DNA of 64,000 nucleotides from Blastocystis sp. Blastoise (GCA_039096225.1 JBBPEB010000013.1:1178001-1242000), one strand, 5' to 3'; positions 19,794 to 58,867 are shown, counted from the first letter of the stretch. Translations and numbers: made by a program. The notes: generated by a model from the letters alone, not told the origin.

Positions 19794-24302
<4,509 letters not shown>

Positions 24303-28463: not shown

Positions 28464-30006
28464 ATGGTGAAAGAAAAGGTGTTATTTGATATTGATAAGT
28501 TTAATAGATTGAAGGAGGATATCAATGTATATGAAGAATTGATGAAAGATGTTGTTAATGTATTTGGATCAGTAATGAATCTTGGTATACATTCTGGAAT
28601 ATCGATTAATAGGCTTATTAAGCATATTGGAGATGATTGTATTGAAAAGGAAGATGAAAGAAATAGATTTGAAAAGAAATCTTTTTATGAAAGAAAGAAT
28701 AATGAAGATATGAATATCAATATGGATGATAATAATGATAATGATAATGATCTAATTCAGTTTACGAATAATGGTCCTGTATTTCAAATATCGAAATCTG
28801 TTTTGGATACCTTGAAAGGTTCTTTTATTGAAGAACAACGTGAAGAAGAATATAGAACAAATGATGGATTCATATATCTTGACTACAGGGGTAATGATAT
28901 TTTTATTTACTATTTAATAGATTATTTGAATGGAAAGAAAGTAGATTTTTCTCAATTTTCTTATGAAGAACAATTAGAACTATTGAATTTATTTGAATAT
29001 TGTGGATTAGTGATTCCTATAGAATTAATCAATTGTAGAGAAAGAAGAGATCGAAAGATGAAGAAATATGAAGAAGAAAATGAAGTTTCTTTGATTATAA
29101 ATGAAAATAAGAATGATATTATTAAAGAATATTTGATACAGAATGGATTATGGAATGAATATGTTAAGAATTATGATAATGGATTTATTAATTATAATCC
29201 TATTGATAATAGTTTATATATGAATAAGAAATATGAATATATTGAATATATTACTGAATATGTGAATAATGGAACTATAGATATAGAAGAAGAAAAGTTA
29301 AGTGATATTAATAAAGAATTATTAGAGAACGAAATGGTTGAATTATTTGGTGAAAAAGGAAGAGAAGAAGCAAAAGAAGCAATTACTCCATTTAAATGTT
29401 TTAATGATACAAAAATACTTATAAATAAAGTGATGGAAACTCCTTTAGTGAATTGGCTTGGTAAAGAAAAGAAATGGAAATTGTTATTTAGAGCAAGTGA
29501 TCATAATTATTCTGCAAGTGAATTCCATAAATATTGTGATAATAAAGGAGAAACAGTAACTCTAATTAAACATATCGGTCATAATAATCATATGAATATA
29601 TTTGGAGGATATACAGATCAAAGTTGGAAATCTGGGTCTGGAAGTATATATTTATTATATATAAAATATATATTTTATAATTTAAATAGGTTATAAACCT
29701 TATTCAAAAGAATTTCTCTTTACATTAAATAATGAACATAATATTCCTCCTACTCAATATGATTATACAAATACTAGTAAAAGTTGTGGTATCTATTGTT
29801 CTTCTTCTTATGGTCCTGTATTTGGAGGTGGTCATGATATTTATATATGTGATCAGTGTCATAATAATACTAATTCTTATTGTACTGTTTCTTATTATAC
29901 TCAAGTGAATACTCCTCAAAAGAATTCATTATTTGTAAATACGAATGATGTTAATTCTAAAAATCATTTTATAGTAGAAGATTATGAAGTTTGGGGAAGA
30001 ATGTGA
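28464..30006 (+). CDS. BTB-like x2 + TLDc domain protein (copy A), one intron 29644-29689
   Basis: DGFIYLDYRGNDIFIYYLIDYLNG resembles the KCTD-type BTB motif. TLDc: WKLLFRASDHNYSASEFHKYCDNKGETVTLIK...IFGGYT...FLFTL...GPVFGGGHDIYI...EDYEVW. Confidence 0.88.
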
Positions 30007-30269
30007 GTTGATTAATAAATTTCATTTGTTTCTTTTTTATATATTATTCATTTTTTATCTTTAATCCTTTTTCCTTATTGTTTCAAATATATGTAAATGC
30101 AAATATATGTATATTTATTTTTTTTTTGTTTAGATATATTAATAGTATTATAACAACAACTCTCATCTAAAAAAAATATTTAATAACAAAAAAAAATGAA
30201 ATATAAATAAAAAAAATAATAAATAAATTTTTATACAATTCATAATAAGCAAAAAAAAATAAATAATTA

Positions 30270-33200
30270 CTACATGTAATATATAGTTTCACATCTAAAA
30301 TTGGGTTCAGATAAAGAAACTCTAAATTGATGATTCGTTGTATTTATATAATTATCTAATAAAGTTTGATATTTCGTAAAATCAGTTGGTCCTATATTAA
30401 TAATATATTTAATATATATAATTTAATAATAGCAAATATATATACTTCCAAAAAGAGGATAGAATTCTTTTAAATGAGGTAGATTTCCATTAGTTATAAT
30501 AGAAATAATTGTATCTAAGACATCTGTAGAATTACGTACATCTATATAAAATATATACAAATAAATAAAAGATAATTTTTTTATAAATACTTATAAAATA
30601 ACAATAATTCTATAAATACTAAAAATAAAGAATCTACAAGTATTTGTATATTTTTGTGTAAGTTGTTCACAAATATAATTATAATATAAATCTTCATGAA
30701 TACAGTCATATATAACACATGTATTAATACATAATATAGGTTTATGAAAACAAAAAGCTAAAGAAGGAAAAGACTCGAACATATTAGGAATTCTTTTTAC
30801 ACTATTTGTACCTAGAATAAAGAATATATATTTGTAAAACAATATACATATAGTCAATATTAATCAATATATAGTATATAGAAAAAATGTCTGTTAATAA
30901 TAATAAGTTTATATATACTATCAAAATATATAGAGAATTCATCTAAGTAAGGAAGTGAAATAGAAGTATTAGCATTTAATAAGTCAATAAATTCAAATAT
31001 CCATGAATAATCAAAGTTTTTATCTATATAAATATAATAAAATATGATAAATAAGAACAAATAAAAATAAGAATACTTTTCAATATGATTCTTAATGATT
31101 TTAAATGTAAAAGTTGATTCTGTTTAAAATAATCAACAAGAACAACAAGTATGTCTTTCAATTCTATATCATTTTCTATATATAAAATAATAATAATAAT
31201 ATATATATATAAATAATTTATACCAAAAGTATATGATAGATTTTGAACATTATTCCATAAAGGTAAATTAATAGATTCTTTTAATAAAGATAAACTATCA
31301 AAACATTTCTCCATAACTATACAATAATTATATATAAATAATAATAGATATACATGAGAAATTAATATCTTGAATATGGTTGGAAAATAATGATAAGAAA
31401 TGATATAATTGTTGATTATTTTCTTTCATTATTATTTCTTCAGGATGTATATGAATTTTATAATAATCATTCTCATCATAATCATGATCATAATCATGAC
31501 TACAATCTTCATATTTCTCATCCTCTATTATATATATATATATTATTCATTATATATTATTTTAATATATATATAAATATACTGATGGTTAATTGTTCTA
31601 CATTATTATATTGATTAGAACGGAGAATCGAAAAATATTCTTTTGTATAATAAATTGATTCATTTTTAGTATTATGTACAACTAGAATAATTAAAAGAAT
31701 ATTTTTTTTAATATAATAATATATATACATCTCAATTGAACAGAATTTACTTTATTGAAATTCATATTTTCATACATAGTTTTTAAGTCTTCAAAAGAAT
31801 TGATATTTTTATATACCAAATCAATATCTATAAATATATCAATAATAATAAAATATATATATATATATACCTATGATAATATTTTTAATTTCATTTCTAT
31901 TTAAATGAATAAGTGGAGTACCAACATTAGAAAAAGATGATTCAAGAACTTTATATATATTATTATATAGAATAAAATAAAAATATATATGAAATTAATA
32001 TTATCAATATATATCTATAAAAACAATACATTGAAAACAAATTTCATCAAATAATAATTGTCCATATTGTCCTAATTCTATGAATCGAGGTTGATCATAA
32101 ATTATTAACGATTGAACTATATATAGAAATATATATATAAAATTATTGTATAATAGATATAATACTTTCAATATAAAATGGATCATTATGTTTCGATCTA
32201 ATTATATCTTCAATTAAATTAAAATTACTTATTTTTATTGTATCAATTAATTTCATAAAAGAATCAGGAAATAAACTAGATTGTAACTCATTCTCTTCTG
32301 TTGAATATCCTTTATGAAGATTAAATAAATTATATATATGTAATTTTGGGAAATGTTCACGAGTTATTACTGATAACAATTCAATTTCATGATTATAGTC
32401 AAACAAACTCATTGCTAATCATATAATAATAATAATATCAAATATAATAATAAAATATATCTTATAAAAATAATTGATTCTATTTAATAATAATAATATA
32501 TACATCGAATTCTAATAGTGGTAACATTTGCAAAAATTCTAGTTGTAAGAATTCTTTTTAATACTTCTTTATATACATCAAATGAATGAGGTGTAATAAC
32601 TATATATATAATAATAATAATAATATCAATAACTAATTTTATATATATATACATCCTAATAAGTCTATAATTTGAATTGTATTAAAGAAACCTTCTTCTA
32701 GTATGTTTAAAAATGGAGGAATATTCAATTGTAATGGATAATCTCCTCCACAGAATGCTATTTAAGATATATAGAATTAATAGATAACTAATATAGTATA
32801 TATACATTTATCATCATAATTATAAAGTTGTTTACAAATAGGTATGTTTGCTATATAAGCAAGGATATCATCACTATTACACATATCTTTCCTATTTATA
32901 GAATAATTAATAAATAGAAAATAATATATATATATATATACACAAAAAATGGATTTGAGGTGTTCTTAACTATATAAATAAATGTCATTAATTTATATAT
33001 ATATATATATACTTCCATTACTAGTTTTAAAAACAAAATGAGTTATTATAAATTTTGTATTATTCATTTTATAATACATTTTTTGATCTACATTTTGTTT
33101 ATTCATTTCTTGTTTATTATATTCACTAGAATAATATTGAGACATTGTTATATTTAATATAGGTTTTTCTTCTTCTTTCTGTTTTCGTATTTCTTCATCA

Positions 33201-34345
33201 ATATCCATAGGTATCTTTATTTCTTTTATATTATTATTTTTATTATTCTCTTCATCTTTCTTAATATCACTAGTTTCATTAATATTATTATTCTCTTCAT
33301 CTTTCTTAGTATCACATAATTCAATATGATAAGAATTTAATGAATATCTTGGATAGTTAGTATGACGTCGTTGATACAAATAATATTCTTTTGGAGATTG
33401 TTTATGATAATAATCTAATAGATATTGCTTGTAAAATATTGAATAAACTGGATCTATTGGTTTTACTTGAATTGTACATTTCGTAGAAAAATAGTGAGCT
33501 ATATAATAAATAAATGATTTATAATATATAATAATATTATATATATTTATATACGTTGTATTGTATATTCCTCTAATTTAGGAAACAATTCATGTAAATT
33601 AGATGGATAAATGTATTCATAAGGAATATCTTCACAAAAACTATCTATATATAAGTAGAAGAAGAGATTCTATAATAATAATATTCATATACATTCTAAA
33701 ACAACATTTGTTATATTTAATAAATCAAATAGTCCAGAATAACTCAAAAACAATTGATTTCGTTCTTTAGTAATAATACCTAAAGAAATAAACTATTTTA
33801 ATTATTTATATATATATACCATTTATAAGAAGTCTACGTTTCTTTAATTCATTATATAGAAAAGGTGGCTCTCTATAAAAAATAAAGTATAAATATAATT
33901 ATTATTGAATATACATTTCAAAATTATTCTCTTTCATAATTTTATACATCGCTTCAACTAAATATTCATATATCATCATTTCACATTCATAATTATCATT
34001 GTGAAAAAAGTATTTTGAAGTTTTATATATGCTATAAACTTCATGGATAGATAGAGAATCAAGAGATAATGATTCTTCCATATAAGCTATCAACTTATCG
34101 ATGAGTAAATGTGGAGAACCCAAAAAAAAAGCATTTTTCTCCTTTATGAATTTGGCGGGATCATTATACGTAAGAGATAACAACGAATTCGGGTATTTTT
34201 CTAACAGGTACATAGGTACACTTTGAGTGAATTCATCTTTGAAGACAAATTCAATAGAATCAGAAACAGATCCATATGGATCTGTTTCATATTGGTTTTT
34301 ATATTCTTTTTGTAGACGAGTAGAATCATCAATAGTATTTGACAT
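30270..34345 (-). CDS. BTB-like + degenerate LRR-like family protein (copy B1), intron-rich
   Basis: N-terminus FVFKDEFTQSVPMYLLEKYPNSLL...FFLGSP; family motif IPYEYIYPSNLHELFPKL; repeated FPxLxxxx[LI] units (HFPKLHIYNL, FPSLAFCFH, LPHLKEFY). Confidence 0.75.
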
Positions 34346-35086
34346 CGTATTATTTTCTATTTAATAGAACTTTGTATTCTCAAAAGAAAAATATAAATAG
34401 AAAACAAAGGAGAAGAAAGAAAAGAATTGCAAGTTTTGATTTGGTTTGTTTTTTATTAATATCATGTAAAGTTTTATTTGAACAAGCTTTATATATTTAA
34501 TAGAAGAGATTTAAAAAATAGAAATGATATGAACGAGTTCATTACTCATTTATTGTTTACAAGTGTTTACATAATTCTATATTGCTATTTATGATATAGA
34601 TTTATTATTTGGGGATTTGAGAGTAAAACAGGTGAATCAACTATTCTTTTTATCATGAATTATTGCAAGTAATAAGAGTTTTTATGCATGTTTTTAAGAA
34701 ATGATAATCATTTTTATTTTTTTAAATATATAAAGATATATATGAAATTATTATAAAGTTATCTAACGTCAACACAAGATGATTAAAAGAATAATTTGAA
34801 AATTTTGATTATATGTTAAAAATATAATAAATTGCAAACCTAAACAAATTATTAATTTATTTATAACTATATGTATTGAATACACAAAAAAAGTAAACAA
34901 GTTTAACAACAGCAAATACTATAATAAAATTCTTTTTAATATTAGAAACAAATTTAGAAAATATATATATATATACTATAGATTAATAAAAAAGAACAAG
35001 ATAAACATATATGTAACATAACTGAATATATAATTTATATTTAAAAAAAAAAGTATATTAAAAAACTAATTAATTCAACAACTGTT

Positions 35087-37338
35087 TTATACACTTGTAT
35101 ATACTTCAAAATCAATTAAATCAAAGATATTTTCTTCATCAGGTTTATCAGTATTAACAAAGAAACTATTACCTAATTCAGGATAAGGAGATATATATAT
35201 TGGGTCTTCTTCATCATCTAAAAGATCATTATTACCATTAATAAATTGATCGTCATCAATATCAGTTCTTAAATATAAGCCACAATAAAATTCGAGTTCA
35301 AATAATGGATTATTACTAGCTAATGCATATACTGAGTTTTCAAGATTAATATCTAATTTCGTATAATCATGTCCATAAGGATTTGTTAATGAAAATAAAA
35401 AGGCTTTTGGATCTATTCTCCATCCCATACCTTCACTATCTTCATCTGTATCATCTATATGATTCTTACCCCAACCAACACTAGTATATCCTCCAAATAT
35501 ATATGATTTATTATCTTTTCCTTTTCCTTGTATAATTACTAATGATTCTTTCTCATCACATTTCTCATGCCATTTTCTTACACTTCTATTCTCATCAGAA
35601 CATCTATATAGAATAATATATAATTATAAACAATATTTAAATTATATATAATATTACCTATATAATAATTCCCATTCTTTATTCTTATCAAACCATCTAC
35701 TTAACTCAATACCCATTTCTTTAGTAATAAGAATTGAGTTTGGTAAATATAAATCAGAATTTGATATGATTTCATATACTTCATAATCATCAACAGTAAA
35801 ACAATTTAATTTCGTTGGTTCATCTGTATTCACAAATAATGACGTACATTGAGGAGTAAGACTTTGAGAATATTTATTAAAATGCTCATTAATACAACTA
35901 TGATAATTTTTATGACAATCATCAGAGATATGTATATCCATAAAATCAGGACCACTTGTCTTATCACAATATAATGCATAATCATGTTTTAATAGAGGAT
36001 ATTTAGTAGGAGGAATATTATGTTCATTACTTAAAGTAAATAAGAAAGATTCATCATCATACTTAAAATCTATAGAATCATTTATATTAGATAGTATTAT
36101 ATAATATATACCTTTTTCAGTTATAGATTTCCAATATTGAGTAGTATATCCTCCAAATATATTAATCTTATTATCATGACCTATGTGTTTAATAATAGTC
36201 ACAGTAGGACATTTAGTATCACAATATTTATGAAATTCACTTGCTTTAAAATCATGTTCACTTGCTCTATATATAGATAATAAATTAAATCTATAAAAAA
36301 TATATTCATATACCTAAATATTAATTTCCATTTCTTTTCTTTGCCTATCCAATTCACTAATTGGGTTTCAAAATATTTCTCTTCAATTATCGTTGAATCC
36401 GCAAATACAGTTGGTATTCCATTCAAATATGTTTTAACAGCTTCTTTTTGTTGATCACCAAATATACTATATACTTCTTCCTCCAATAAGTTAGTATCTA
36501 TATTTTTGATTTCTTCTTTTTTTATATAAAGATAACCACTTTCCATACATCCATTAATATACTTCATATACTTATAACTCATATTTATAGACATAATATC
36601 ATTCAAATAATTATAATCAACATATCCATTCTTATATTTCATTATATAATCATCCCATAAATTATTGTTTATTAAATAATTCTTAATCATATCATTTTTC
36701 TTTCCATTAATATTTAGAGAAACTTCATCACCTTTTTCATACTTTTTTTGTTTTTTATCTCTTTTTTCTCTACAATCTAATAATTCTATAGGAATTGGCA
36801 AATTACAAAATTCAAATAACTCTAGCAACTTTAATTGTTCTCGAAACTTAATTTGACTATAATCTATAACTTTATCATTCAAGTAATCTATTAAATAATA
36901 AACGGATGCATCGTTTCCTCGATAATCAAGGAAAATATTTCCATCACTTGTTCTCAATTCTTCTTCAGATTGTTCATAAATATAGGAATAAGGGATCGAA
37001 TTGATAATTGTTTTTGATAAGGAAAACAAAGGGCCGTTTCCAGAAAAACGAATAAGCTCAGTATCATTAGTATCACTCATATTCATTATTGCAGTAGCTT
37101 TTCCTGTAGCATTATCAAGAAAATGTTTCAATTTTGAGAATTTATCACTTCCTCTTTGAATGCAATCTTCATTTAGATTATTAAGAGCACCTTGAAGTTT
37201 CTGACCAGAATAAAGTGTCAAAGAAAGGATAGAAGTGAATCCTTCTACAATCTTCTTCATTAATTCATCTAAACCACTAACAGCTTCTTTAACTTGATTC
37301 AAAGAATCTAAATCAAATAAAACACCTTCTTTTATCAT
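35087..37338 (-). CDS. BTB-like x2 + tandem double TLDc protein (copy C), three introns
   Basis: Paralogous N-terminus MIKEGVLFDLD, DGNIFLDYRGND. TLDc1 WKLIFR|ASEHDFKASEFHKYCD...DDYEVY; TLDc2 WELLYR|CSDENRSVRKWHEKCD...IFGGYT...IDFEVY. Confidence 0.87.
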
Positions 37339-37628: not shown

Positions 37629-39695
37629 ATGTCAAACGCTGAATCACAGTTATTGGAAGATAAATGTATTTAAATATGAATAAAAATTATTTATTTTCTT
37701 TTAGATTTATTTACATTTCAAGATGAGACGCAATTATGGATTTCTAAGGAATTTATTGAGAAATATCATCAATTTCCCTTTTATGATATCATTGAACACT
37801 CTGATAAATATGAAGATGATAGTTATTATATAGATATGTTGCCTTTTCATATAGAAAAAGTGATTGTTTTTTTGATAGACAAAAACATGGATTTTGAATC
37901 ATTAAATCTACGAGATGGTTATGATATATATAAAACACTTATTGAATATTCATTTTCACTTGATAGTGATATACAAAAAGAATTATTAAATCAAGTTAAA
38001 AAATTATTTATTAATTATTTGATAGAAAATGATTATGATCTATGTTCATATGAGAATGGATATAAGCTCTTACATGAAGTTCCTACCAGACTGTATAGTT
38101 TATATAATGTAAAAATATATATAAAAGGTAAATATATATAATTATATAGTAATAATAGAGTGTATATAGGATTGTTTACTCCTCAACGACAAGAAGAATT
38201 ATTATATTATTCGCTTCTTATTAAAATGATAGATATAGTAGTAGTGACCATTAAATGTATATATGTTTAATATATTACTAATAATCTATAAATAGATGAT
38301 TATGCTTCGAATATTCCATTAAAATATATACATCCATCAAATATTCGAAATATATTCCCTTCATTAAGAAGATTAATAATAACTGGTATATATATATATA
38401 TATGTATTTATATTACTTCATATATTATAATATATATAGTAATTACACATTATAAGAAAAGTGAAATATTATTAAATCCGAATACCGAAGAATATACCTT
38501 GGAATATCTTCGTATATATAGTGAACTTAAAAATAGCAAAAATAATTATTGTAAATATGATTATTACTCAAGATCAGATATAAAAAAATATAAGAGAATA
38601 TCTTTATATATGAACAATTTACAAAATTTCAATAATTTTAAATTTTATCATGAGAAGAGGCCAAGAAAGTTATACAAATTATATAAGAATTTCATTAATG
38701 AAGCTATATATACAAATGATTATTCACAAGTAGAAATAATTAAACCAGAAAATGAATGTACATTAGAAGATACAGTTGAAATTGAAGTTTATTGTATGTA
38801 TAATATAATTATTCCATTATTATCATTATATATAGATAACTCAAATCATAACGAATTCTCGTATATAATTATACTTCTTTATATTATGAATTATTTTAAA
38901 CATATATGAATAATAGTATTAAGGAAGTGTCTTCAAAAATAGGTATGTATCAATTATTACATCTTTTTTCTTTTTATAAAAATTCACAAATCAAGTTTTA
39001 TCCATGTATATAATTATATATAATTATATTAAATAATCTATTTTAGATAGTATGTCAAAATATAAGTCTATAATTCTTATAAAAGCAGCAGAAGAAGGTG
39101 TTTTTGACTCTTTCACTACATTAAGTTTTGGATGGAGTATTATTTAATTGTTCTTATATATATTATTATTCAATGTAGTTAAAAGAGAACCTCAATTAGA
39201 TTATAATATAATTAAAAGAATACTGACAACTCATGTATTTCCAAATGTTATTGAACTTATATTTAAATATTATGGTATCTATTTATTTAAATATATATAT
39301 ATATAGATGTATCCTTTATATCTTTAATAAAAAAAGAATGTTTTCCAAAACTACATATTGTCACCTACGATAATTCTACCGGTAATATATATATATCAAT
39401 AAATATTCTATTTTTTATACTAGATATTGAAAGCTTTAAGTTTTTATTTCCTGTTAATATAATATCAATGATTGATACTATTCATATACATGAAACTGGT
39501 TTTTATCAAAAAGAGAAATTAGCGCTTCTTTTTGATAATCTAGCTTATACTCATTCAATTCATATTGATGGAATTGATGAGTTGATTTTCTTTTTACCAC
39601 ATTTAAAAGAATTGTTTGAAAAGAATCTTATTTCCTTTGATGAGCTTAAAAGTATATAATATGTAGATATTCCTTTTTTTTAATGTGCTATGTAT

Positions 39696-39733
<38 letters not shown>

Positions 39734-41270
39734 ACTTAATCTATAAAGTTGATTCTTCTGATTCTGTGCATGCTAAAAAATTAGAGTGTTTTGAAAATTA
39801 CAAGCAAAATATTGATTGGTTATGTATTAAATTAAATTGTATTTTATGTTTAATAATAAATAAATAATGTATAATTTAATACGAATTCTTATTGATTTAT
39901 AGATTATAGAAAAGATTGTCATAATTTAAATACTCCAGAAAGAATTGATGACAAAAAATGTTTAAAAAGATTCATAAGTAGTAAAAAAATTCAATATTTG
40001 GATTATTTATTTATTAAGCGTATATTCTTTATAATATTATTATCATATTTTTTATAATATTTATAGCTGATTATACTATGAGTATAGAATACTTAAAATG
40101 GATATCAAATATCTTTGATGATAATAATATTATTACTATACATGCATTAAATATTAATTGTATATTATATTGTTAAATACATGATTTATATAGTATGTTT
40201 TAATGGAAAAAAAGTATTAATTGAATATTATAATATATTTGAAAATATATTGTCTAACTTAATACCTAAAGCTTCTGTTATTACAATGGAGGGTAATTAT
40301 TTATATACATTTATAATCATTATGATAATAATTATTTAATTACTTTTACTATACTTAATAGCTAGCTGTTTGTTTTTTGTAAGGCGATTAATTCAAAAAC
40401 GTTATTTTTATAATACTACTCAATTATATATACGTATATATATTATATATATATTTTTCATTCATATAATATATTTTATTCTATTTTAATATAAATATTA
40501 TAGATGATTTTGGTAAATGTTATGAAAACTTTTTTGATGTATATACTACCGACAATTTACCTCATTTAAAAGAAATCACTTTTAGTATTTATTAATAACA
40601 ATAAAATATTATATTATAAATCATATTTTATGTATATTTTTCTTATATTTTGATTCGATTTGAATTAAATATTATCTAAATCTATAGAACAATTAAGCCG
40701 TGACGAATCGTGGATATCCTTTATTCATAAATTTTATAAATGTATTAGTAATAAAAACTTTCCAATATCAACTACTATTTATTTCTCATGTATATCCATA
40801 ATAAAGATTCTATTAATATGAATTATAATAATATTTCTATAGCTTCCTTTTTTCCTGGTTATCATTATGATCCTAATACTTCTATTTTTCGATTTAAATA
40901 TGATAGTAATTATTTTATGGATACAATTAGATGTACAGGAAGTATATATATATATATATATATATAACGTATTATATATATATATATAGATGAAACCATG
41001 AATGAATATGAGATGGAAACGTTATTTGAGTGTATAATAGAAAATAAAACTCAAAATATAAGATATTTAGAAATACTTGTTTATTATGAAGAACAAATGT
41101 CAAAACTTATCAATTTTATTATTACTGGAAAATTCCCGAAATTGAAAAAGTTAACTTTATATACTTATCGTACTATTTCAGAAGAACAGAATAATGTATA
41201 TATACAACTATTGAATGATTCTTCATTTATTCAAGAAAATCATGTGAATTATACAATCAAAAAATATTAA
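37629..41270 (+). CDS. BTB-like + degenerate LRR-like family protein (copy B2), intron-rich
   Basis: MSNAESQLLEDK|...FTFQDETQLWISKEFIEKY...YYIDM; YASNIPLKYIHPSNIRNIFPSL; THVFPNVIELI; CFPKLHIV; GKFPKLKKLTL. Confidence 0.78.
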
Positions 41271-41754
41271 TAACTTTTGTTGTATATACTTATTTGTTAT
41301 ATCCTTAAAATTATGTTTAAATATTAATTTATTCTACTATTATTCTTTAAGTATTCATAACGTTTCTATTAATTATATATATATAAAAGTATTGTTTAAT
41401 TCAAAAAATGAAATGATAGTTATCAATTTATATATAAAAATAACTTATAATAACAAGTATATAATAATTGGATGTTTTCTTCAATTCTATGCAGTTGTTA
41501 TGACAAAGATGATTGTTTTTTATTTCTTAATTGAACATTTTTAAATAATGAGTTTTCTTGGATAAATTTAAAAGAAATAGCTTACAAAAATCTATGAATA
41601 TTCTATAAATACAATATTTAGAAACAAAACTTTTTCTAAAACAAATAAAAATATATATATAAATTACAAATATTGATAGATATATTATTTTTATATATAA
41701 ACCAATGAGAATATAAATGATTCATATAAATATATATATAACAAAGAATCATTA

Positions 41755-45340: not shown

Positions 45341-47040
45341 ATGTCAACAACTGAAACTAGTCTAAGCGAAGATAAATGTATTTAAATTTAATTAAGAAAT
45401 ATTTATTTTCTTTTAGATTTGTTTACGTTTCAAGATGAGATGCAATTATGGATTTCTAGAGAATTTATTGAGAAATATCCTCAATCTACCTTTTATGATA
45501 TTATTAAACACTCTGATAGATACGATGATGGTAGTTATTATATAGATATTCCTTATTCTCCTATGAATAAAGTGATTGATTTGTTGATGGATGATAGTAT
45601 AGATATATTTTCATTAAATCTACGAGATAGTTATGATATATATAAAATACTTTATGGATACTCAGTTACTATTGATAATGAAATAAAGATTGGTTTATTA
45701 TTTCATATTAAAGATCTATTTCAAAATTATTTAAAGGAAAATAATTATATTGTACATGAATGCTATTGTGAAGATAATTCATTATATATTCCTATGGAAT
45801 TATTTAGTTCAAAAAGTAGAAGAATGTGTATAAAAGGTAATTGTATATTATTATATACACATTAAATATTAAAAAATATAAAGGATTATTTACTCCACAA
45901 CGAAAAGAAGAATTACTATATTACTGGCTTCTAATTAAAATGATGAATATTACTGATGTTTGTATTGAATGTATGTATATATATATATATTATATAAAAG
46001 CTAATATTTTATATATCTAGATTCATATGCATCAAATATTCCATTAGAATATATATGTCCATCGTGTATTAAAGATATATTTCCTTCTTTGGAAGAATTA
46101 ACAATAACTGGTAAATATAGAACTTTATTACATGTATATTATAATGTACATAGTAACTACAGATTATAAGAAAACTCATAAATTATTAAATCCAAATAGT
46201 GAGGAATATATAATGGAATATATTTGTTTATTTGCAAATGATATTGATACAATAGATAATCCTAAAAAATATAAATATTACTCAGATTTGGCCATAACAA
46301 TATATAATAAGATTTCTAATGTAGATCTAAATAATATATATTATTCCCCTGATTTAATATCTTCTTATATTTGGGAAAAAGCAATGAATCAATTACCTAA
46401 ATTATATAAATATGTAGTTAATGAAGCTATATATACAAATGATTATTCACAAGTACAAATAGCAAAGACTATTGATGAAAATACCATAAAGGATCAAATT
46501 ATAATATTATATGATAGTATATACTAATATAAAAGCATTTTGTTTATAATAATTATATATATAGAGAATAAAAACATTAGAAAACTATGGTATATCTTTG
46601 CTTTTTTACATATATGATTTATGATATATTTATATAAATATATATTAAATAGTATTTATGAAGTATCTTCTAAATGGGGTATATCTCAATTATTGAATCT
46701 TTCTTCATATTTTTCTATTTCACAAATCGAGATGAGCAATTGTAAATGACTATATATATTTATGAATATATATAATATACTTAATCATTTATTGTTAGAT
46801 GATTTTTCTGAATATAATGCAATAATTTTTATAAAACTATTAGAAGAAGGTATTTTTGATTCTTTAACTACATTAAGTGTTGGATGGGGTATTTATATAT
46901 ATATAATATTATTATTCAATAATATTTTTTTATTATAGTTAAAAAATTGACGGTAAATAAAAATAAAAATCTATTCAATAGAATTATGACAACTCATGTA
47001 TTTCCTAATGTTACTGAACTCATCTATGATGATTGTTATG

Positions 47041-47105
<65 letters not shown>

Positions 47106-49252
47106 ATCTTTCAAATTATCTTCAATAAAGAAAGAACATTTCCCCAAACTACATATTTTAAATTATAATGTTGAAATAAGTAAATCTATTTTATTTATAT
47201 ATTTAGCATAATTTTTATACTAGGTATTGAAAATTTTGTTTCTTTATTTCCTACGAATGTAGTATCAATGATTGATACAATAAAAGTTGAAGACATTAAT
47301 TTCAATCAAAAGGAAAGAATCATCTTTCTTTTAGATAATTTAGTTTTTAATCATTCAATCCATATTGATGGAATTGGTATTTTTAATAATATTACTATTA
47401 TTATTACTATAATTATTATTATATATATATATATATATATAATTATCTATATGATTAATTATATTTCTTTTTCTAATATAGATAAGCTTATTTATTATTT
47501 TCCACATTTAAAAGAGCTATTAGAGAAAAATCTGATTGTCTTTGATCAACTTTATAGTAATTAATATTTTTATACTTATTTTTACAAAATATTATTATAT
47601 ATATATATCTTATAAAGTTAATTCTTCTTGTATTGTAAATATTAAAAAATTAGACGATTTTAAAAATTATACACAAAATATTGATCGTTTAGATATTTCA
47701 TTCAAAAGTATGTATTTTTATTTAATGAGAATGTAGTGTATCTATAATACTTGTACTAATTATTATTTATAGATTATATATTGCGTAAGGATTTAAATGT
47801 TTTAAATGAATTTGATACAAGAAAATCTTTAGAAAGATTTTTAAAGAGTAATATATTAGAACATTTGAATTATTTAAATATTTCAGGTATATATATATAT
47901 ATTATTATGTTTTATATAATATGTTTCTAGTTGATGAGAATATAAGTATAGAACGTTTGAAATGGATATCAAGTCTTTTTAATAACAATAATTTTAAAAC
48001 CATTCATTGTTTATATTTTGATTGTATATCACTTACTATTATAAAACATATGAAAATATATATATATTTATATAGTAAATTCTATCTCAAAAGACTCATC
48101 ATCTGAGTATTTAATTGCATATGAAAATATAATAAAAAAATTAATTCCAGAGGCTTCTATTGTTACAATAGCGCGTATCAATATATATATATTGTTATCA
48201 ATAATTCGTTGATTCATTTTATCTTTATTCATAGATTGTACTATGACTTTTATAAACCAATTAATTCTCAAAGGTTGTTTCCATTATACAAAACAATTAA
48301 TTATTGGTATATACTAATATATTTATTATATACATATAATTTCTTTGATAATATTACATTATATATGTCATTCTCTTATTATATTAACGTCATTCTAGAA
48401 ATAAAGGATATAATAGATGAAAACTTTTTTGAAATATATACAAAAGATAATTTCCATGAATTAGAATCTATAGAGTTTCGTATATATATTAATAATAATA
48501 TTCAATTATAAATAGCAAATTATGTAATATATAAACATTTTTATAATATAAATTATTCTAATGAATCTATATAATAAATATCTATAGGTAATGATTGGGA
48601 TATAGAATTATGGTTATTTTTTATTCAAAAATTATGTAAATATATTCATAATAATAGTTTTCCATCATCAACTATAATTCGATTTAGTAGTATGTTTATA
48701 AGAATTATTATATTCATATAATTAAACTATAACTATATAGATACACTTGTTTCTAATGTATGCTTCACTTATCATCCTAATACTTCTATTCTTCGATGTA
48801 AATATGACAGCCATTCATTTTTAGATACAATTGTTGGTAATAAAGGTATATATATGTTTAACTATCATATGATATATTTATATTTAGACAAAATGATAAG
48901 TAGATATGAAATAGAAACATTATTTGATTGTATAAATGAAAATATAACTCAAAACATTAGATATATAACAATATGTATATATATATAATAATTATTAATA
49001 TAAATTTTTGTTGTTATAGATATTTGTGATGATACACAATTAGCAAAACTCATCAATTTTATAACTATTAGAAAATTTCCTAAATTGAAAATGTTCATTT
49101 TTCAGATCAGTATGTATATAGTTATTTATATTAAATGTTATATAGGTTATGATATTTCAACTGAACAAATTACTATATATAAACAACAATTAAAGGATTC
49201 GTCATTTATTCAGGAGAATCATGTAAATTATGAATTTGAAAAAACATTATAA
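45341..49252 (+). CDS. BTB-like + degenerate LRR-like family protein (copy B4), closest paralogue of B2
   Basis: FTFQDEMQLWISREFIEKYPQSTFYDIIKHSDRYDDGSYYIDIP; YASNIPLEYICPSCIKDIFPSL; THVFPNVTELIY; C-terminus DSSFIQENHVNY shared with B2. Confidence 0.78.
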
Positions 49253-50460
49253 TTTTCTTTACGATTATCTTTTATGTTTCTCTTTGCTATTATATTTAAT
49301 AATCTATTTTTATTATCTATTATCATTTCTAAGATTTTTATAGGTAATTACTATTTTATTTTAAAGCATTTGAAAAAATATTGCTTATGTATTTATTATT
49401 AATACATTTTTATGTTGTACTCACTCAGCATTTACTTTAAATATATATTCGAAATTATTATTATTATTACTATTATTATATGCTATTCTGAAATATAGAT
49501 AACTAAAAGTAATTCATAAACATTAGTTGCTATGTAAACGTTGATATGTTAAAAAGTAGTGATTCTAGTGAGTCACAATTATTTGGATATATATAAAAAA
49601 TAATGAAAATAGTATTATATTTCATATTTTGTTTATCACTTTATTGACTTTATTGTATACACTTTTGTTTATGTTTTTAAAATAATTATATAGCAAGTGT
49701 TATAAAGATGGTATTATTCATAGAGATTACTGAATAAAATGTTCAAATTTTTAATATAATTTTATAAATAATTTTTAATATATATGCTTTTATCGAAATA
49801 TAGATGTATTTATGTATTCAAAATTATGAAATAATATATATTACTATTAAATCTTTGACATAGCTTAAAGTTTTCAAACGCTATAACAAAAATGCATTTA
49901 TAGAATATAATTAGTGTATTCAAGAAGCATGATTTGAACTACTGTGTTTTATTCTTATTATTATTATATATATTTTTATAACTAATTTTAAATATAGAAT
50001 AATAATCAAAAATTACGAAATAAATATGCTTATAATAATATTATACTTATTAATATGATATATTTATTCATTTGTTGTAACATATTTAAAAAAATATAGA
50101 TTTCTTTTAAGATGAATATAATATTGAATAAAAGATCAGAAATATTCATTATTAATCCATATATAGATAACATAGTATCAATAGCAATAGTGATTATGAT
50201 TTGGATAGCTTAATCAATTATTGTATAAAATACTATGAATAAAATAATGTGAAATAGAAATGAAAGAGTAAGAAGAAGGAGATAGAAAATAAAGGAGAGA
50301 TTTTTGCATCTAAAGCTATAGAAGAGATTTTATTTGAGTAATAGAAACATATCATATAAATATGATATAAAAATAAATAATAATATATTAAATTCAGTCA
50401 GAAATCAGGAATGATTACATAAAAAATAAAAGTTATTCAACACTAGATAAGTAATAATTA

Positions 50461-50505
<45 letters not shown>

Positions 50506-50868
50506 ATATAAATAAAAATAAAAATGTATATGTTTAAAATAAGAGATTTATTAATCATAATGAAAAATAAGCAAGAAGTATTAATTCGTTAGGCATATTA
50601 TCCTGTTTCTAGTATCTTCTAAATTTTCAATTAATATTCAATCATCATTTTAAAGTAACTAATCAACTGAAGATCCATAATGAACTTTTTATTTTTAGAT
50701 ATTCTTAGCAGATTTTTTAGATCATATTGAGTATTAATTGTTGTATATAATGTTAATCATTACATATGAATGATAAGCGAATAATAAAGAAATAAAAAAA
50801 AAATTTTGAAAAAAGTAAAAATAAACAAGGGAAACAACAATATATATTTAATTAGCATTATTTCATTA

Positions 50869-52332
50869 ATGGTGAAAGAAAAGGTGTTATTTGATATTGA
50901 TAAATTCAATAGATTGAATGAGGATATCAATGTATATGAAGAATTGATGAAAGATGTAGTTAATGTTTTCTCAGCTGTAATGAATCTTGGTATACATTCT
51001 GGAATATCGATTAATAGACTTATTAAGCATATTGGAGATGATTGTATTGAAAAGGAAGGCGAAAGAAATGAATTTGAAAAGAAATGTGTTTATGAAAGAA
51101 AGAATAATGAAGATATGAATGTTAATATGGATGATAATGATGATAATGACATGGATTTGATACGATTTACCAATAATGGTCCTGTTTTTCAAATATCGAA
51201 ATCTGTTTTAAATACTTTAAAAGGTTCTTTTATTGATGATCAACGTGAAGAAGAAAAAAGAACGAATGATGGAGCTGCATTTCTTGATTATAGAGGTAAT
51301 GATATTTTTATTTATTATTTATTAGATTATTTGAATGGAAAGAAATTAGATTTTAATTCTTTTTCTTATGAAGAACAATTAGAAATATTAGATTTATTTG
51401 AATTTTGTGGATTAATAATTCCTTTAGAATTAATAGATTGTAGAGAAAGAAGAGATCGAAAAATGAAGAAATATGAAGAAGGAGAAGAAGTAGAATTGAT
51501 TATAAATGAAAATAAGAATGATAATATTAAAGAATATTTAGTAAAGAATGGATTATGGAATGCTTATGTTAAGAATTATGATAATGGATTTATTAATTAT
51601 AATCCTATTGATAATAGTTTATATATGAATAAGAAATATGAATGTATTGAATATATTACTGAATATGTGAATAATGGAACTATAGATATAGAAGAAGAAA
51701 AGTTAAGTGATATTAATAAAGAATTATTAGAGAAAGAAATGGTTGAATTATTTGGTGAAAAAGGAAGAGAAGTTGTGAAAGAAGCAATGATTCCTTTCAA
51801 ATGTTTTAAAGGTACGAAAATACTTATAAATAAAGTGATGGAAACTCCTTTAGTAAATTGGCTTGGTAAAGAAAAGAAATGGAAATTATTATTTAGAGCA
51901 AGTGAGCATGATTATAAAGCAAGTGAATTCCATAGATTGTGTGATAATAAAGGAGAAACAGTTACTATAATTAAACATATAGGTCATAATAATCATATTA
52001 ATATATTTGGAGGATATACTAATCAAAGTTGGGATTGTTCAGGTTCAAAAAACTATTCAAGTGAATTTCTCTTTACATTAAGTAATGAACATGGTATTCA
52101 ACCTACTCAATATGATCATGTTTATAGTTATGGTATATATTGCAATTCTTCTTATGGTCCCACATTTGGAGGTGGTCATGATATCCATATATCGAATCAA
52201 TGTCATAATAATACTAGTTCATACAGTAATCCTTACTCCTATTCTCAAAAGAATACTTCTCAAGGAAGTACTTTATTTGCTAATATGAGTAACTTCACAG
52301 TTGAAGATTATGAAGTATGGGGACGAATATAA
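50869..52332 (+). CDS. BTB-like x2 + TLDc domain protein (copy D), intronless
   Basis: Continuous ORF from MVKEKVLFDIDKFN; near-identical to copy A over the N-terminal two thirds; complete TLDc domain. Confidence 0.9.
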   Translation: MVKEKVLFDIDKFNRLNEDINVYEELMKDVVNVFSAVMNLGIHSGISINRLIKHIGDDCIEKEGERNEFEKKCVYERKNNEDMNVNMDDNDDNDMDLIRFTNNGPVFQISKSVLNTLKGSFIDDQREEEKRTNDGAAFLDYRGNDIFIYYLLDYLNGKKLDFNSFSYEEQLEILDLFEFCGLIIPLELIDCRERRDRKMKKYEEGEEVELIINENKNDNIKEYLVKNGLWNAYVKNYDNGFINYNPIDNSLYMNKKYECIEYITEYVNNGTIDIEEEKLSDINKELLEKEMVELFGEKGREVVKEAMIPFKCFKGTKILINKVMETPLVNWLGKEKKWKLLFRASEHDYKASEFHRLCDNKGETVTIIKHIGHNNHINIFGGYTNQSWDCSGSKNYSSEFLFTLSNEHGIQPTQYDHVYSYGIYCNSSYGPTFGGGHDIHISNQCHNNTSSYSNPYSYSQKNTSQGSTLFANMSNFTVEDYEVWGRI

Positions 52333-52679: not shown

Positions 52680-55402
52680 TTATAAAGGAACAGTAACACA
52701 ATTAATAGTCAACTTAGAATGATATGTTTTTTTACATTTATCAAATAAATGAGTAAACATATTCCAATCTACTTTATCTATATATAAATAGATAATTGAT
52801 ATTAATAATAGTAATAATATATATATATACCACTCTTAAGGGTTATAGTAGTAAGTTCAGAAAAATATCCTTTTCCTATTAATTGCATGACTTTCTGTAA
52901 GAACTTCGTATCATATATATCTATATATATAATAATAGTAACATTAACAAGAAGAAAGAAAAATGAATAAAAACAATATTAATATGAAGAATAATAATAA
53001 TAAAAAGAAGACAAAAAATACAAGAAAATATGTTAAAAAGAATGCTAATAATCATAATACAATATCTTTCAATAAACATATATATATATAATAATAAATA
53101 TCGAATATTCTTTAGATAATCTTGTGAGAGTTGTTCATATATATAATCACAATAGATCTTTGAATGTCTTGGATTCTTCACTAAATCACTACACATAAGT
53201 ATATAGGAAACAGATTTATGTAGATAGAAGGAGAGAGAGGGGAAGGATTCAAAAACATCATCAATATTCACTGAATTATCAATAAATTTAAATCTTGAAT
53301 CTAGATATATAATAATTTATAATTATAAGGAAATATATGATATAATGTATGGCTATAATATGAGTAGTAAATAACATAAATAGTAATACAAACATATATG
53401 AATAATGTAAAACAAATGAATATATATATATACTAGTAGGTGTGAATCGCAGTGCGAAATGATGGAATTCTGAAAGAGCACCAGAAGGGACTTCTTTTAA
53501 TAAATCAATAAATCCAAGGAAGGATTGAATATCAAAATCATTACTATCGAATCCAAGTGTAAGGTAACGAAGTTTTAAGAATTGGTTTTGAATAAAATAA
53601 GTTGAGAATGTTTGGAAGAATGAATTGATATTAATTGTACTATCAAATCCAAAGAATAGAAATTGTATATTTGTCCACAGGGGCATATTAACACATTCTT
53701 CTAAAAGGGATATTAAACTGAAATTAGATTTAAAAACTATATAATAAAAAATGAATAAATAGAATACATAGTATATGACAATTATTTTTGTAAAAATAAT
53801 TGATATATATATATACAAACAAAATCAAATTTAGTAAGTGCAGGAGAGAATAAAGATAAGAACCTCGCCATATTTTGACTGTTTTTAATTAGAACTTCTT
53901 CTGGTTCTACAGGGTTATCGCTTAATATGGATGTATCATTATTAATTATCTTTAAATGTTTAACTGTTTCACAGTTTAATTTGGAGAATAAATCCAGAAA
54001 GTCATTCATATAAGATACATTATAGGGTGTATTACGCGACTGAACTATTTATATGTATTCTTTATAAGATTTATGAATATAGAAGAAGATATTTAATTAT
54101 TATTGATAAGTTACATATATATAAGTAAAGCTAACCTATATCTTAGTAATTATATATATGTAATAAGTGTCATATAGATATTACAAATATATATACTGAA
54201 TATATCAATAGTTTCAAGATTATGGCAGTTAATACTACTTACCACAGGTATATAAGCATCAAGAAGTTTCCTACATGTTACATCTGCATCTATATATATA
54301 TATGTATATACATACACAAATATAAAGATAGATATAAGCTATGTAATAATATAAGCTATACAATATATATAAACTATATAAACTATATATACGAAAAGCG
54401 ATATGTTTTACATTCTGTTGACTCATATCAATAAACACATTCTTCTTCTCATCATCAAATGAAGAAAATGAGAAATAGATTTCATTTACAAGAAGATGTC
54501 CTGTTTCGTTTAATTCTTTCCAGGAAGAAGTAAGTTGTCTTGAGATTATAGCTATATATAGAGAGAGAAAAAAGGTTTGAATGAATCTCTACTATATATG
54601 TTATAGCTTGAACATTGATATTATATTTGTTAACTAGAGTAATGAGATTCTTCATAATAGGTTCACTAAAATGAACAGTATATGTGATAGGATCATGTTC
54701 TTCTTCATTTGATACTATAAGTGTATCTATAAGTAGAAGAAGAGAATCAGGGCATAAGGAATCGAATAATACTGAAGAATCATCCCACCAACAAGTATTA
54801 ACAAAGGATGTTATATCATATATATGTAACTTGGGGAAACATCGACGAGTTATTAAAGGTAATATTTCTATATTAAAAGTACTCTCTTCTTTCCATTTCT
54901 TAGGATCTAAACATATATATGTTAATTATATACATATATGAATATATAAATAGAGAATATACTAAAACAGAACAGTGTAGTTACATTAGGAAATCTATAG
55001 GTAGCGAGAATTCTTTTCAATAACTCCTTATGTTCAGGATATGAACCTGACTGTAAAACTATATATATTTATATAGTTATATAGTTATATAGCTATATAG
55101 TTCTTTATAAATATATATATATATATAAATACATAGATATTCATAGAAAAATATAAAAATAGATAAATAATTAAAAACTCATAAACAAAGAGATATATTA
55201 ATAAATATATATACATAGAGTTAAGTCAAATGTAGTAATATTATTTAAATATCCTTCTTTCAATAATTTTAATAGAGGAGGGGTATGTAATTGTAACTTA
55301 ACATTTTGTTTATTTGGATTAATAATCTTCTTTAGATGTTTACAAACAGGTATATGTAAAATATAATTAGTAATCTCTTCAGAATCTCTATTTGCCAATC
55401 TA

Positions 55403-55434
<32 letters not shown>

Positions 55435-56136
55435 AATTAGACTAACGATATAAAAGATTATATTCTATATAAAAGTATTATAAATATATAAAAGATTATA
55501 TTTTATATAAAAATATTATAAATATTTAAAAATATTATAAATATATAAAAGTATTATAAATATATAAAAGTATTATAAACATATAAAAGTATTATAAACA
55601 TATAAAAGTATTATATACGTCAGAATAGGGTGTTGATAATCCTTATCTATATACATATTAATAATAATAAATAGAATAATAATAATAATATACTATCATC
55701 ATCCCCATATACAAATTTATAACTACATTCTATTCTTTCTAGATTATTAGTACTGACTTTTTTCTCCGCAATTTGGCGAAGTTGAAATTCATTATATTCA
55801 CTTGAGAAATCTGAAATGGATTCAACATATAAATCGGGTTTTAATTCTTCTCTTTCATTCTTTATTTCATTATCAATATTTATATCTATCATTTTAAAAG
55901 GACATCTTCCTTTATCATCGAATTCATGTTGTATTACTGACTGATTTACACGAATTTGATCTCTATTTAATTTATCATTCTCTATATCAGGATGATCACG
56001 TTTATATTCTTCATAAGAATCAGGATAATATTCCTCAAAAAATTGACGCTTATATTCTTTATATAATACTTTATAATGAGGATCCATTCGTGTTACTAGA
56101 ACTTGCTTCTTTAAAGGAAAATAAAAAACTATAGAA

Positions 56137-56168
<32 letters not shown>

Positions 56169-56968
56169 ATATAAATATACATATAATTTCAAATTCTTTT
56201 ATTTTGGGAAACATAATATTCAGATCTGAAGGATATACATAATCATAAGGATTGTCATTATCAAAGAATGCTATAAAGAAATTTGTAAAAAAGAATAATA
56301 AAAAAATAATATACTTTGCATAGTAACACTGATAACATTAAATAACTCAAATAATTTTGAATATTTTAAAAACATATTCGATCTCTCTTCTGTAAAAGGA
56401 CCTATAAAATAATAGTTATATACAGAGTCACATAAAAAGATACCTCCTATAGTTAATTTATGTTCTTTAAGAATATCATATAGGCATGCATTATCATCAT
56501 AACGACTAAATGCTGGATACACATAAACAAATTCCAGCATGCAAAGGTTTTTATCAATAAATTTCTTTAATGATTCAGCCAAAAACACATACAACTTTGA
56601 CTCATATTCACAGGCTTCACTCCCAAAGAAATATTTGAGATCTTTGTACATAGAGACGACGTCGTTGATCTGTATATTGCTTAAAGAAAGTGTGCCTTTC
56701 ATAAATTGTGTCACTTTCTCAATGGAAAGAGGTGGTGAATCAATTCTATATGCATTCTTATCTTTCACAAAGTTGTCTGGATTATTGTAAGCAAGTGACA
56801 ACAGCGAATTAGGAAATTTCTTCAAAAAAACTAATGGAATCCGTTTCTTTGTTTTATTTTGAAAAATGAACGAAACTATATTGCGTTGATTTATAAGACT
56901 GAAGAATAAAAACCATAAATACCTTGTTGTTTTGGATCATTTATACTCTCCGTTATTTCTTCTGCCAT
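52680..56968 (-). CDS. BTB-like + degenerate LRR-like family protein (copy B5), intron-rich
   Basis: MAEEITESINDPKQQ|VSFIFQNKTKKRIPLVFLKKFPNSLL...AYRIDSP; NPYDYVYPSDLNIMFPKI; RFPNVTTL; CFPKLHIYDI; FESFPSLSFYLHK. Confidence 0.75.
55466..55616. repeat. ~19-bp minisatellite (ATATAAAAGTATTATAAAY)n in a B5 intron
   Basis: Several direct tandem copies visible. Confidence 0.8.
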
Positions 56969-57195
56969 TCTTTCTTATTTATAGTTCAATAATATTATTT
57001 TTCTATGTATTCTTGAAGTGTATTCAAGAAAGAGAAATAAATATTGTTATAAGTTCAATATTCAAACTAGAAATAAATAGAAATGTAGAGATAACTGCCA
57101 ATGAAAACACAAAACAGTGAACAAATTCTGAATAACGAATTTTCTGTGGGAATACAAGATAACTTTTATTCTTATTCTGTAGCTTATACTATTAT

Positions 57196-58867
57196 ATGAT
57201 GGTAAAGGATAAAGTAGATTTTGATGTGAGGAAGCTAGATGATATTCGGGATGATGTAGTTCATTTTGAAAGACTGATTGGTGATTTGGTTGGTGTTTTA
57301 AGTAAGTCAATAAGTTTTTGTATTCACTCCGGTGATTCTATTAATAGTTTGTTGATTCACTACTTAGGTAATAATGTATCTAGTAATATGGAAAACGATT
57401 GTGATCCAAAAGAAAATATTCAAGAGCCGTCTTGTATTAATAATAATAACATTGATACAAATGATATGGATTATATTCAGTTTTCTAGTAATGGAGTACT
57501 GTATTCGCTTCCCAAGAAAGTTACAAATAGTTTAATAGGTAGTTATTTGTATGAGCAATCTCAAGAAGATCAAAGAACTGTAGAAGGTCATATATATTTA
57601 GATTACCCTTATAATGATGCTTGTGCTCCTTACCTTATAGATTCATTAATGAATAAGAAAATAAATGTAGAACAATTAAATATGAAAGATCAAATTGATT
57701 TATTAAGACTCTTTGAATTTTGTGAATTACCTATTCCTGTAGAATTATCAAAGGGACTTATTGTAAGGAACTGTGAAATGAGAATATATAAAGAAGATGA
57801 TGATATTAAGCTGTATATAAATGGGAAGAAGGATATTTCATTGAAGAATTATTGGAAACGAAAAGGTAGATGGAATCAGGTTGTAAGAGAGTATTGTTAT
57901 GGATATGTTGATTATTATGAGCAAGAGAAACAATTGGTTATTAAAATGGAATATGAATATATTGAATATATATATCAATATGTTAGATGTAATTGTATAT
58001 ATATTTCACCAGAGAAGAAAGATCTAATTAATAAAGAATTATTAAGAAAAGAGATATATAAATTATTTGGTGATGAAGCATTAGCAATGACATTTGATTG
58101 TGATGTTAACAAGACATTTAATCAGTCTACAATCATTAATCAAGAGCTTGCTACTTCATTGATGAATTGGCTTGGAACACGAAAAATGTGGAGATTACTA
58201 TTTAGGTATATATATAATATTTTCGGTATATAGTATATACTATTATTTATATAATATAATATTATTTATATAGTATTATGTATATATATTATATAGTATT
58301 ATTTATATATATATTGATAACTATTCTACATATATAGAGCAAGTGATCATAATTATTCTGCAAAAGAATTCCATAAGTATTGTGATAATCGAGGAGAAAC
58401 AGTAACTCTAATTAAGCATATAGGTCATGATGATCATATTAATATATTTGGAGGATATACAGATCAAAATTGGGAATCAAAATCTGATAGTATATATATA
58501 TATATTCATTTATATATTCATTTATATATTCATTTATATATTCATTTATATAATTATAGCGTGGAAGCCTCATTCAAGTGAGTTCATTTTTACCTTAAGT
58601 AATGAGCATGATGTTTCTCCCACTAAATATTCTTACTCTCTTCATTATGAAAAATTTGCTATGTACTGTGACAGTACATCAGGCCCAAGATTTGGTAATG
58701 ACATTGATATATGTGATAACTGCCATTACAATCGTTCTTCATGTAATTCACGCAATTATAATGAATATAATACTCCTCAAAAGAATTCTCTATTTGTGAA
58801 TACTAATGAAGCTGATGAAACGAATTATTTTATTGTAGATGATTATGAAGTATGGGGCAGAGCTTAA
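57196..58867 (+). CDS. BTB-like x2 + TLDc domain protein (copy E), introns 58206-58337 and 58490-58559
   Basis: MMVKDKVDFDV, EGHIYLDYPYND; TLDc WRLLFR|ASDHNYSAKEFHKYCDNRGETVTLIK...GPRFGNDIDI...DDYEVWGRA*. Confidence 0.87.

Follow-up and report, generated by a model that had tools for sequence, protein, structure and literature searches.

At positions 28464-58867 of a 64,000-nucleotide stretch (hereafter the window, G000:C16:1178001-1242000) from the genome of the tortoise-gut Blastocystis sp. 'Blastoise' (33.3 Mb in 34 contigs, GC content ~22%), nine adjoining genes were found, of which four (A, C, D and E) encode proteins with a TLDc domain and five (B1 to B5) encode proteins that combine an N-terminal BTB domain with a leucine-rich repeat (LRR) solenoid. 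In the reading favoured here, to which a probability of roughly 40% is assigned, this array is one stretch of a genome-wide amplified BTB-LRR/BTB-TLDc module that serves as a diversifying intracellular recognition or adaptor repertoire, rather than a group of housekeeping genes. Both families are large and of defined architecture, their linkage is non-random, stereotyped and old, the partners have been duplicated together, and they are under purifying selection while the LRR region evolves fast. That the two families also act together is probable, given their joint copying and the common type of BTB oligomerisation domain.

Size and genome-wide linkage of the two families

A search with protein D as query returned 203 proteins at E ≤ 0.001, and the 120 listed were all from Blastocystis sp. 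Blastoise, with identities of 42-88%. Six-frame searches of the whole genome yielded at least 156 TLD matches out of 346 candidates and at least 150 matches to the N-terminal region of the B proteins out of 267 candidates, each of the latter with E < 1e-27. The B-family proteins looked up by name were all from this species, and only 73 clusters were matched when a profile of the B N-terminus was run with HMMER against 1.84 billion representatives; the amplification is apparently lineage-restricted. Taken together, the families comprise at least ~350 genes, equivalent to at least 4% of the ~8,400 annotated genes (a total estimated from the locus-tag range), and are among the largest features of the genome, the module having been copied hundreds of times.

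On the initial annotation, the two families should not be distributed independently of each other, and this held genome-wide. The linkage tests were based on the TLD and B coordinates among the matches listed (150 scored candidates each), with 2000 permutations as control, in which positions were jittered by 50 kb so that regional clustering was kept. In total, 73 of the 150 B starts lay within 10 kb of a TLD match, compared with 18±4 expected under a uniform distribution and 35±5 under jitter. In 39 cases, the B start was followed at 5-8 kb by a TLD match on the same strand, whereas jitter gave 3.6 such cases on average and never more than 11. Further recurrent classes were head-to-head (12) and convergent (6) B/TLDc pairs, as well as 8 divergent B-B pairs, in 6 of which exactly one partner was followed by a TLDc gene. 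The latter define a three-gene module, in which one B gene (type b, see below) stands head-to-head with another (type a) that is followed by the TLDc gene. The families are dispersed over at least 28 contigs, and confinement to subtelomeric regions was considered and rejected, with 14-15% of the matches lying less than 50 kb from a contig end compared to the 8% expected.

Domains and folds of the two protein families

Protein D passed the Pfam gathering score for TLD (PF07534) by a wide margin (87.5 bits, cut-off 24.5). Its AlphaFold model, built with 66 paralogues (predicted local distance difference test score, pLDDT, of 81), consists of a long helix (residues 10-58), a T1-type BTB domain (91-198), a domain of ~110 residues without assignment (199-306) and the TLDc domain (309-487). 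In this model, the TLDc domain superimposes on that of NCOA7-AS with a Z score of 20.1 and a root-mean-square deviation (rmsd) of 2.0 Å over 155 aligned residues, and on those of OXR2, mEAK7, Oxr1 and Rtc5p with Z scores of 15-19, while residues 91-198 match the BTB domains of KCTD5 and KCTD17 (Z 10.1, 94-97 of 95-102 residues aligned). At the profile level, domain 1 of the TLDc family aligned to BTB_2 with an hhalign probability of 61% (E 7.8e-5). For the domain at 199-306 the probability was 22%, with the alignment falling over the expected motif, and only 0.1% when compared with domain 1 (91-198); a single one of 33 family members matched BTB_2 in this region (E 0.088). Of the BTB-BTB-TLDc architecture originally proposed, the first BTB domain and the TLDc domain were borne out by their folds, while the second BTB domain is unverified.

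The domain order is varied by C, which has a second TLDc copy (35090-35623 against 35657-36313, blastp E 3e-12). Paralogues of 700-708 amino acids (aa) are common (e.g. P0062, P0072 and P0076), which suggests that the two-TLDc form of ~700 aa constitutes a whole subclass rather than a single duplication. At four places (G000:C4:1312482-1313579, C16:1813267-1814617, C33:218721-219554 and C21:421020-421856), Pfam matches to BTB_2 and TLD neighbour each other on the same strand, and these more canonical genes may be less derived relatives and the source of the big family. TLDc proteins of animals and yeast bind the vacuolar ATPase (V-ATPase), and structures of TLDc domains bound to V-ATPase are among the fold matches of D (7u4t, 7uzg, 7fde and 9nn1).

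In the model of B4 (AlphaFold, 48 family members, pLDDT 75), residues 9-116 align with the BTB domain of KCTD13 over 102 of 104 residues (Z 9.1), and a solenoid spans approximately residues 290-660, with strands and helices alternating at ~330-650. The best Foldseek matches of this solenoid were COI1, NLRPs, NLRC4, ribonuclease inhibitor and D3 (E from 2e-5, probability 1.0), and nearly all top matches were LRR proteins, with a VIA Z of 8-9, a moderate value for a repeat protein. The N-terminus of the family aligned to the BTB_2 profile with an hhalign probability of 92% (E 7.5e-7), and its own profile matched BTB_2-repeat proteins in the HMMER search described above (E 3e-7). The nearest matches to this profile beyond the present genome are two eukaryotic ENA proteins, P0181 (953 aa) and P0183 (423 aa), with 8 and 4 tandem BTB_2 domains, respectively. 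The BTB/T1 fold predicted for the N-termini of both families was thus recovered in models and profiles alike, and the LRR-like character of the B solenoid was confirmed at the level of fold.

Family-level Pfam searches were less sensitive to these divergent sequences. BTB_2 was the sole recurrent Pfam family in the 48 B proteins (3 of 48 at E < 0.01), and its cut-off was passed at one B locus (C14:751246-751422) and at the four places beside TLD matches. In the window copies, no Pfam BTB match was obtained, with exon-1 open reading frames (ORFs) searched to E 1 and the domain segments of the TLDc family to E 10. Likewise, no Pfam LRR family scored above the gathering score in P0121, P0122, P0123 or the 48 B members scanned, and searching PDB sequences with the profile of the B N-terminus gave chance-level matches only. 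A distant B-like protein, P0190, passes LRR_6 with 28.3 bits against a cut-off of 23.4.

Two subtypes of B proteins can be distinguished. Type a comprises B2 and B4 (51% identical to each other overall), and its members are ~720 aa or longer and 36-56% identical to B4, whereas type b, comprising B1, B3 and B5, shows 17-22% identity to B4. The homology between the two subtypes covers the BTB region and the start of the LRR, as seen for B1 against B4, and type b contains an additional acidic insert.

Co-duplication of the module and competing explanations

Twenty 10-kb loci of the tandem class were fetched, and co-duplication was tested on 19-21 modules, which were chosen for being tandem. All 20 loci contained a type-a B gene followed by a TLDc gene on the same strand, with a start-to-start distance of ~5.1-5.7 kb in 19 loci and ~4.4 kb in one. 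The type-a B gene, including its introns, showed ~70% nucleotide identity across modules over its whole length, and the TLDc gene together with 0.93 kb of upstream sequence showed 77-80% identity within one clade. Over the ~0.93 kb located 5' of D in the window (about 49950-50868), 12 clade-1 modules share 73-79% identity, while the ~0.7 kb right after the B stop (49250-49950) could not be aligned between modules, one module being collinear throughout. Judged from these alignments, 49950-50868 resembles a 5' region or promoter common to the modules, beside a recombination-prone spacer. A hidden exon was considered here and rejected, since the region contains no long ORF and its identity matches the synonymous divergence (dS) of the neighbouring genes; as this is the level predicted by that dS, neutral decay suffices to account for it. 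Past the TLDc stop, the sequence is not common to the modules.

The divergence of the B genes, measured over the BTB exon, was correlated with that of the first exon of the neighbouring TLDc genes (Mantel r 0.50, p 1e-4; 0.46 without recent duplicates), and the B sequences track two deep TLDc clades, between which the identity is 38% (p 2e-4). The partners consequently co-diversify, as the initial annotation had anticipated for neighbouring genes. Since this correlated divergence is accompanied by discordant nearest neighbours, the modules both co-duplicate and recombine: they have been copied as DNA segments, with recombination in the spacer between the type-a B gene and the TLDc gene. Close pairs differ by dS of 0.04-0.5, and their overall ratio of nonsynonymous to synonymous divergence (dN/dS) is 0.3-0.7. 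The ratio is highest in the B LRR, at 0.5-1.0, and lowest in the helix of the TLDc family and in the B BTB domain, the latter with 0.2-0.5, all being crude Nei-Gojobori estimates in a genome of 22% GC. Mean pairwise identities follow the same order, reaching 64% in the B BTB domain and 37-38% in the LRR, while the TLDc domain, at 62%, is the best kept of its family. The modules are under weak purifying selection, and the LRR is the fastest-evolving part.

The products of a module are cytosolic proteins sharing a T1/KCTD-type BTB domain, with one or two BTB-LRR proteins (type a, often with a type b encoded head-to-head upstream) accompanied by one BTB-TLDc protein. KCTD/T1 BTB domains oligomerise, and in the favoured reading those of the module would drive homo- or hetero-oligomerisation into multivalent assemblies. 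In such assemblies, the diversified LRR solenoids would provide variable recognition and the conserved TLDc domain a common output, plausibly the binding and regulation of V-ATPase in a vacuole-dominated cell, as in animals and yeast.

Several points weigh against this reading. A functional pairing through the BTB domains is inferred, and a complex prediction for the BTB domains of D and B4 gave a score of 0.00, which counts neither for nor against binding. A sequencing run of uncertain type was uninformative as to expression, with 14% of the words present and only short contigs, many of them from paralogues, in which no intron-spanning joints appeared. The nearest-neighbour relations of the partners are frequently discordant, and the 86% identity of A and D contrasts with only ~41% between B1 and B5, the type-b genes next to them. 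Moreover, the arrangements vary even within the window (tandem, convergent and head-to-head), the fraction of paired genes rests on 150 scored candidates per family among the matches listed, and the dN/dS values are crude, as stated. Finally, segmental duplication alone would result in adjacency and correlated divergence, with no physical interaction needed.

This last point leads to a quite possible alternative, namely that unequal or ectopic recombination multiplied an ancestral segment on which a BTB-LRR and a BTB-TLDc gene lay by chance, the two families being copied together while acting independently. Such hitch-hiking would explain why the modules align as DNA through introns and upstream sequence and why partner phylogenies are concordant only in part. 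It also fits the dS of only 0.04-0.5 between many copies, which indicates that much of the expansion is recent, and the complex prediction, which gave no support for binding. It accounts less readily for tandem order and spacing being kept across the two deep TLDc clades, with B tracking them, for a pairing that stays while the intergenic spacer turns over, for both genes staying open with dN/dS < 1, and for one type of oligomerisation domain being common to both partners. The idea of a paired receptor/adaptor system put forward in the initial annotation is hence supported in part, by folds, adjacency and co-diversification, though co-duplication alone would suffice for the latter two.

It is unlikely that the two families are instead independently expanded cullin-RING substrate receptors, comparable to MATH-BTB or F-box proteins, with the BTB domain on the cullin and the LRR or TLDc domain on the substrate. 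The BTB fold does resemble that of Cullin-3-binding KCTDs (KCTD7/Cul3, 8i79; KCTD5/Cul3, 8u80) and the B solenoid that of the F-box LRR receptors COI1 and D3, the genome encodes at least one cullin that has a neddylation domain, and a ubiquitin-like ORF is located ~2 kb away from the array. However, not every T1/KCTD BTB domain binds Cul3, the six-frame search revealed only one clear cullin gene, whose best PDB match, from one 91-aa exon, is a weak one to Cullin-4B, and this reading would leave unexplained why the families are paired in a fixed manner. The cullin gene is located at ~290-292.5 kb of G000:C15 (region 276141-292540), ~5 kb from a type-a B/TLDc module with its B start at ~285.8 kb, which is probably a coincidence. 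The ubiquitin-like ORF at 61041-61202 (+) is short, with a ubiquitin-like C-terminus that has an LRGG motif, and probably represents the final exon of a gene for a ubiquitin-like protein.

It is very improbable that a mobile or selfish element carries the module as cargo or that the copies are decaying pseudogene arrays, as might be suspected from the high copy number, the spread over at least 28 contigs with mild contig-end enrichment only and the in-frame stops in some copies. Between the nine genes there is neither a transposase-like ORF nor any other gene, and frames of ~500 aa are open in most copies, with dN/dS < 1. The published gene models demanded RNA-seq-supported introns (PMC12129017), and the unshared sequence past the TLDc stop means that the modules have no common element ends.

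The array in the window, its relatives and its significance

The gene spans (Table 1) were derived from blastp among stop-to-stop ORF pieces at 28-59.5 kb, which fall into two paralogous sets, and from annotated proteins mapped exactly onto the window. The intergenic gaps are 228-742 bp, with the exception of the 1620 bp between B4 and D, and all ORFs of at least 100 aa at 28464-58867 sit within one of the nine genes. The spans and ORFs together establish that the order and orientation originally reported for nine consecutive genes, with nothing else between them, are correct, and that each TLDc gene adjoins a B gene. A and B1, as well as D and B5, are convergent neighbours, whereas C/B2, B3/B4 and B5/E are head-to-head pairs at distances of 291, 344 and 228 bp, respectively, and B3-B4-D forms a complete three-gene module with B3 first. 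A is paralogous to D, C and E (blastp) and shares 86% identity with D in its first exon, compared to 38% identity between E and D in the N-terminal exon.

Table 1. Genes of the BTB-LRR/BTB-TLDc array and the B4-D spacer, in window coordinates
Feature	Description	Position	Strand	Evidence
TLDc-A	helix, T1-BTB, middle domain and TLDc; 2 exons	28464-30003	+	Pfam TLD 46.1 bits on exon 1
B1	type b BTB-LRR; P0123, 952 aa, 20 exons	30273-34345	-	938/952 residues map exactly
TLDc-C	N-terminal architecture as in A, then two tandem TLDc	35087-37338	-	Pfam TLD 28.9 bits, single exon
B2	type a BTB-LRR; close to P0122 (714 aa)	37629-41273	+	blastp and mapping
B3	type b BTB-LRR; near P0145	41758-44997	-	blastp and mapping
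B4	type a BTB-LRR; P0121, 721 aa, 18 exons	45341-49249	+	exact mapping
Spacer	B4 to D	49250-50868	no strand	blastn and alignment of 12 modules
TLDc-D	P0001, 487 aa, intronless	50869-52332	+	Pfam TLD 87.5 bits
B5	type b BTB-LRR; near P0127 (862 aa)	52683-56968	-	blastp and mapping
TLDc-E	divergent copy, three exons	57196-58867	+	blastp; TLD match G000:C16:1236318-1236485

The introns of the B genes, which have 18-20 exons, are very short and extremely rich in AT, and many of them consist mostly of (TA)n. The published annotation demanded RNA-seq-supported introns (PMC12129017), which lends indirect support to the 18-20-exon models. Outside the array, a multi-exon gene at 20131-23306 (-) encodes an unrelated P-type cation ATPase, recognised by the GDGxNDxP hinge motif in ORF translations.

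The array had been likened to paired nucleotide-binding leucine-rich repeat (NLR) loci. As in plant paired NLRs, where sensor and helper genes stand head-to-head, the genes are tightly linked, often divergent LRR genes in rapidly diversifying clusters. In Blastocystis, however, the oligomerisation module would be BTB, and a third partner, TLDc, is present. No NB-ARC or NACHT nucleoside triphosphatase (NTPase) was found by Pfam in the 48 B proteins or the TLDc proteins, and the models of D and B4 contain no P-loop domain. Without an NTPase of the STAND class (signal transduction ATPases with numerous domains), this is not an NLR system; the comparison stands for linked, often divergent LRR genes and is an analogy only. 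In a more far-reaching reading, hundreds of three-gene modules could form an undescribed intracellular recognition system of the tortoise clade, in which the diversifying type-a and type-b LRR sensors and the TLDc effector of each module would assemble in T1-BTB rings and couple ligand recognition to control of V-ATPase and the central vacuole, in an innate-immunity-like function or in surveillance of symbionts or viruses, convergent with NLRs. This more specific proposal is considered distinctly unlikely.

The constituent domains have relatives elsewhere. The TLDc fold is similar to that of OXR1, NCOA7, mEAK7/TLDC1, TBC1D24 and Rtc5p (Z 15-20, rmsd 2.0-2.9 Å, 152-166 residues aligned, 145 for Skywalker/TBC1D24), and the core residues of the animal and yeast domains are conserved in the Blastocystis family. 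The animal and yeast proteins differ in having other N-terminal partners and a single or few copies, and V-ATPase binding, which is demonstrated there, applies here by analogy only. The BTB domains are similar in fold to KCTD/Kv T1 domains over nearly the whole KCTD BTB (Z 9-10), and the signature motif aligns to BTB_2. Compared to these, the window copies are too divergent for Pfam and have LRR or TLDc as C-terminal partners, the likeness resting on models and profiles. As for the B architecture, COI1, D3, FBXL proteins and plant FBL11-type BTB-BACK-LRR proteins likewise place an adaptor of the Skp1/BTB-fold class before a ribonuclease inhibitor-like LRR solenoid. The B proteins contain a T1-type BTB with neither F-box nor BTB-BACK, and are massively amplified and paired; the likeness to the FBL11 type (Atlas feature score 0.84) serves as a lead only.

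The closest parallel to the TLDc family is found in Entamoeba, with 54-343 TLDc genes per species (PMC12930195). The Entamoeba BTB_2-TLDc proteins resemble those of Blastocystis in the order of a T1-type BTB followed by TLDc, in huge lineage-specific copy number and in their occurrence in an anaerobic gut protist. The Blastocystis proteins have, in addition, the N-terminal long helix and the ~110-residue domain, and they are coupled to the BTB-LRR family; for Entamoeba, whose gene neighbourhoods were not checked, a coupling of this kind is not reported. Atlas clusters containing both PF02214 and PF07534 occur in Evosea, Rotifera and diatoms, and in cnidarians and arthropods TLDc occurs in fusions with many receptor-like domains (Atlas). 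No description of an amplified module coupling BTB-LRR to BTB-TLDc genes was found in the literature, and the main text of the genome paper mentions neither TLDc nor BTB (PMC12129017). The view that no system with such an architecture has been described can therefore be maintained for the amplified paired module, but not for BTB-TLDc proteins or TLDc expansion as such, which are already known from Entamoeba.

Apart from their link to V-ATPase, TLDc domains are poorly understood. If the favoured reading is true, a diversifying LRR repertoire would have TLDc as its constant partner, which would provide a new handle on the role of TLDc and may help explain the amplification of TLDc genes in gut protists such as Entamoeba and Blastocystis. 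If the pairing reflects co-duplication only, the locus still records how a multigene family grows by segmental copying and recombination in a defined spacer.

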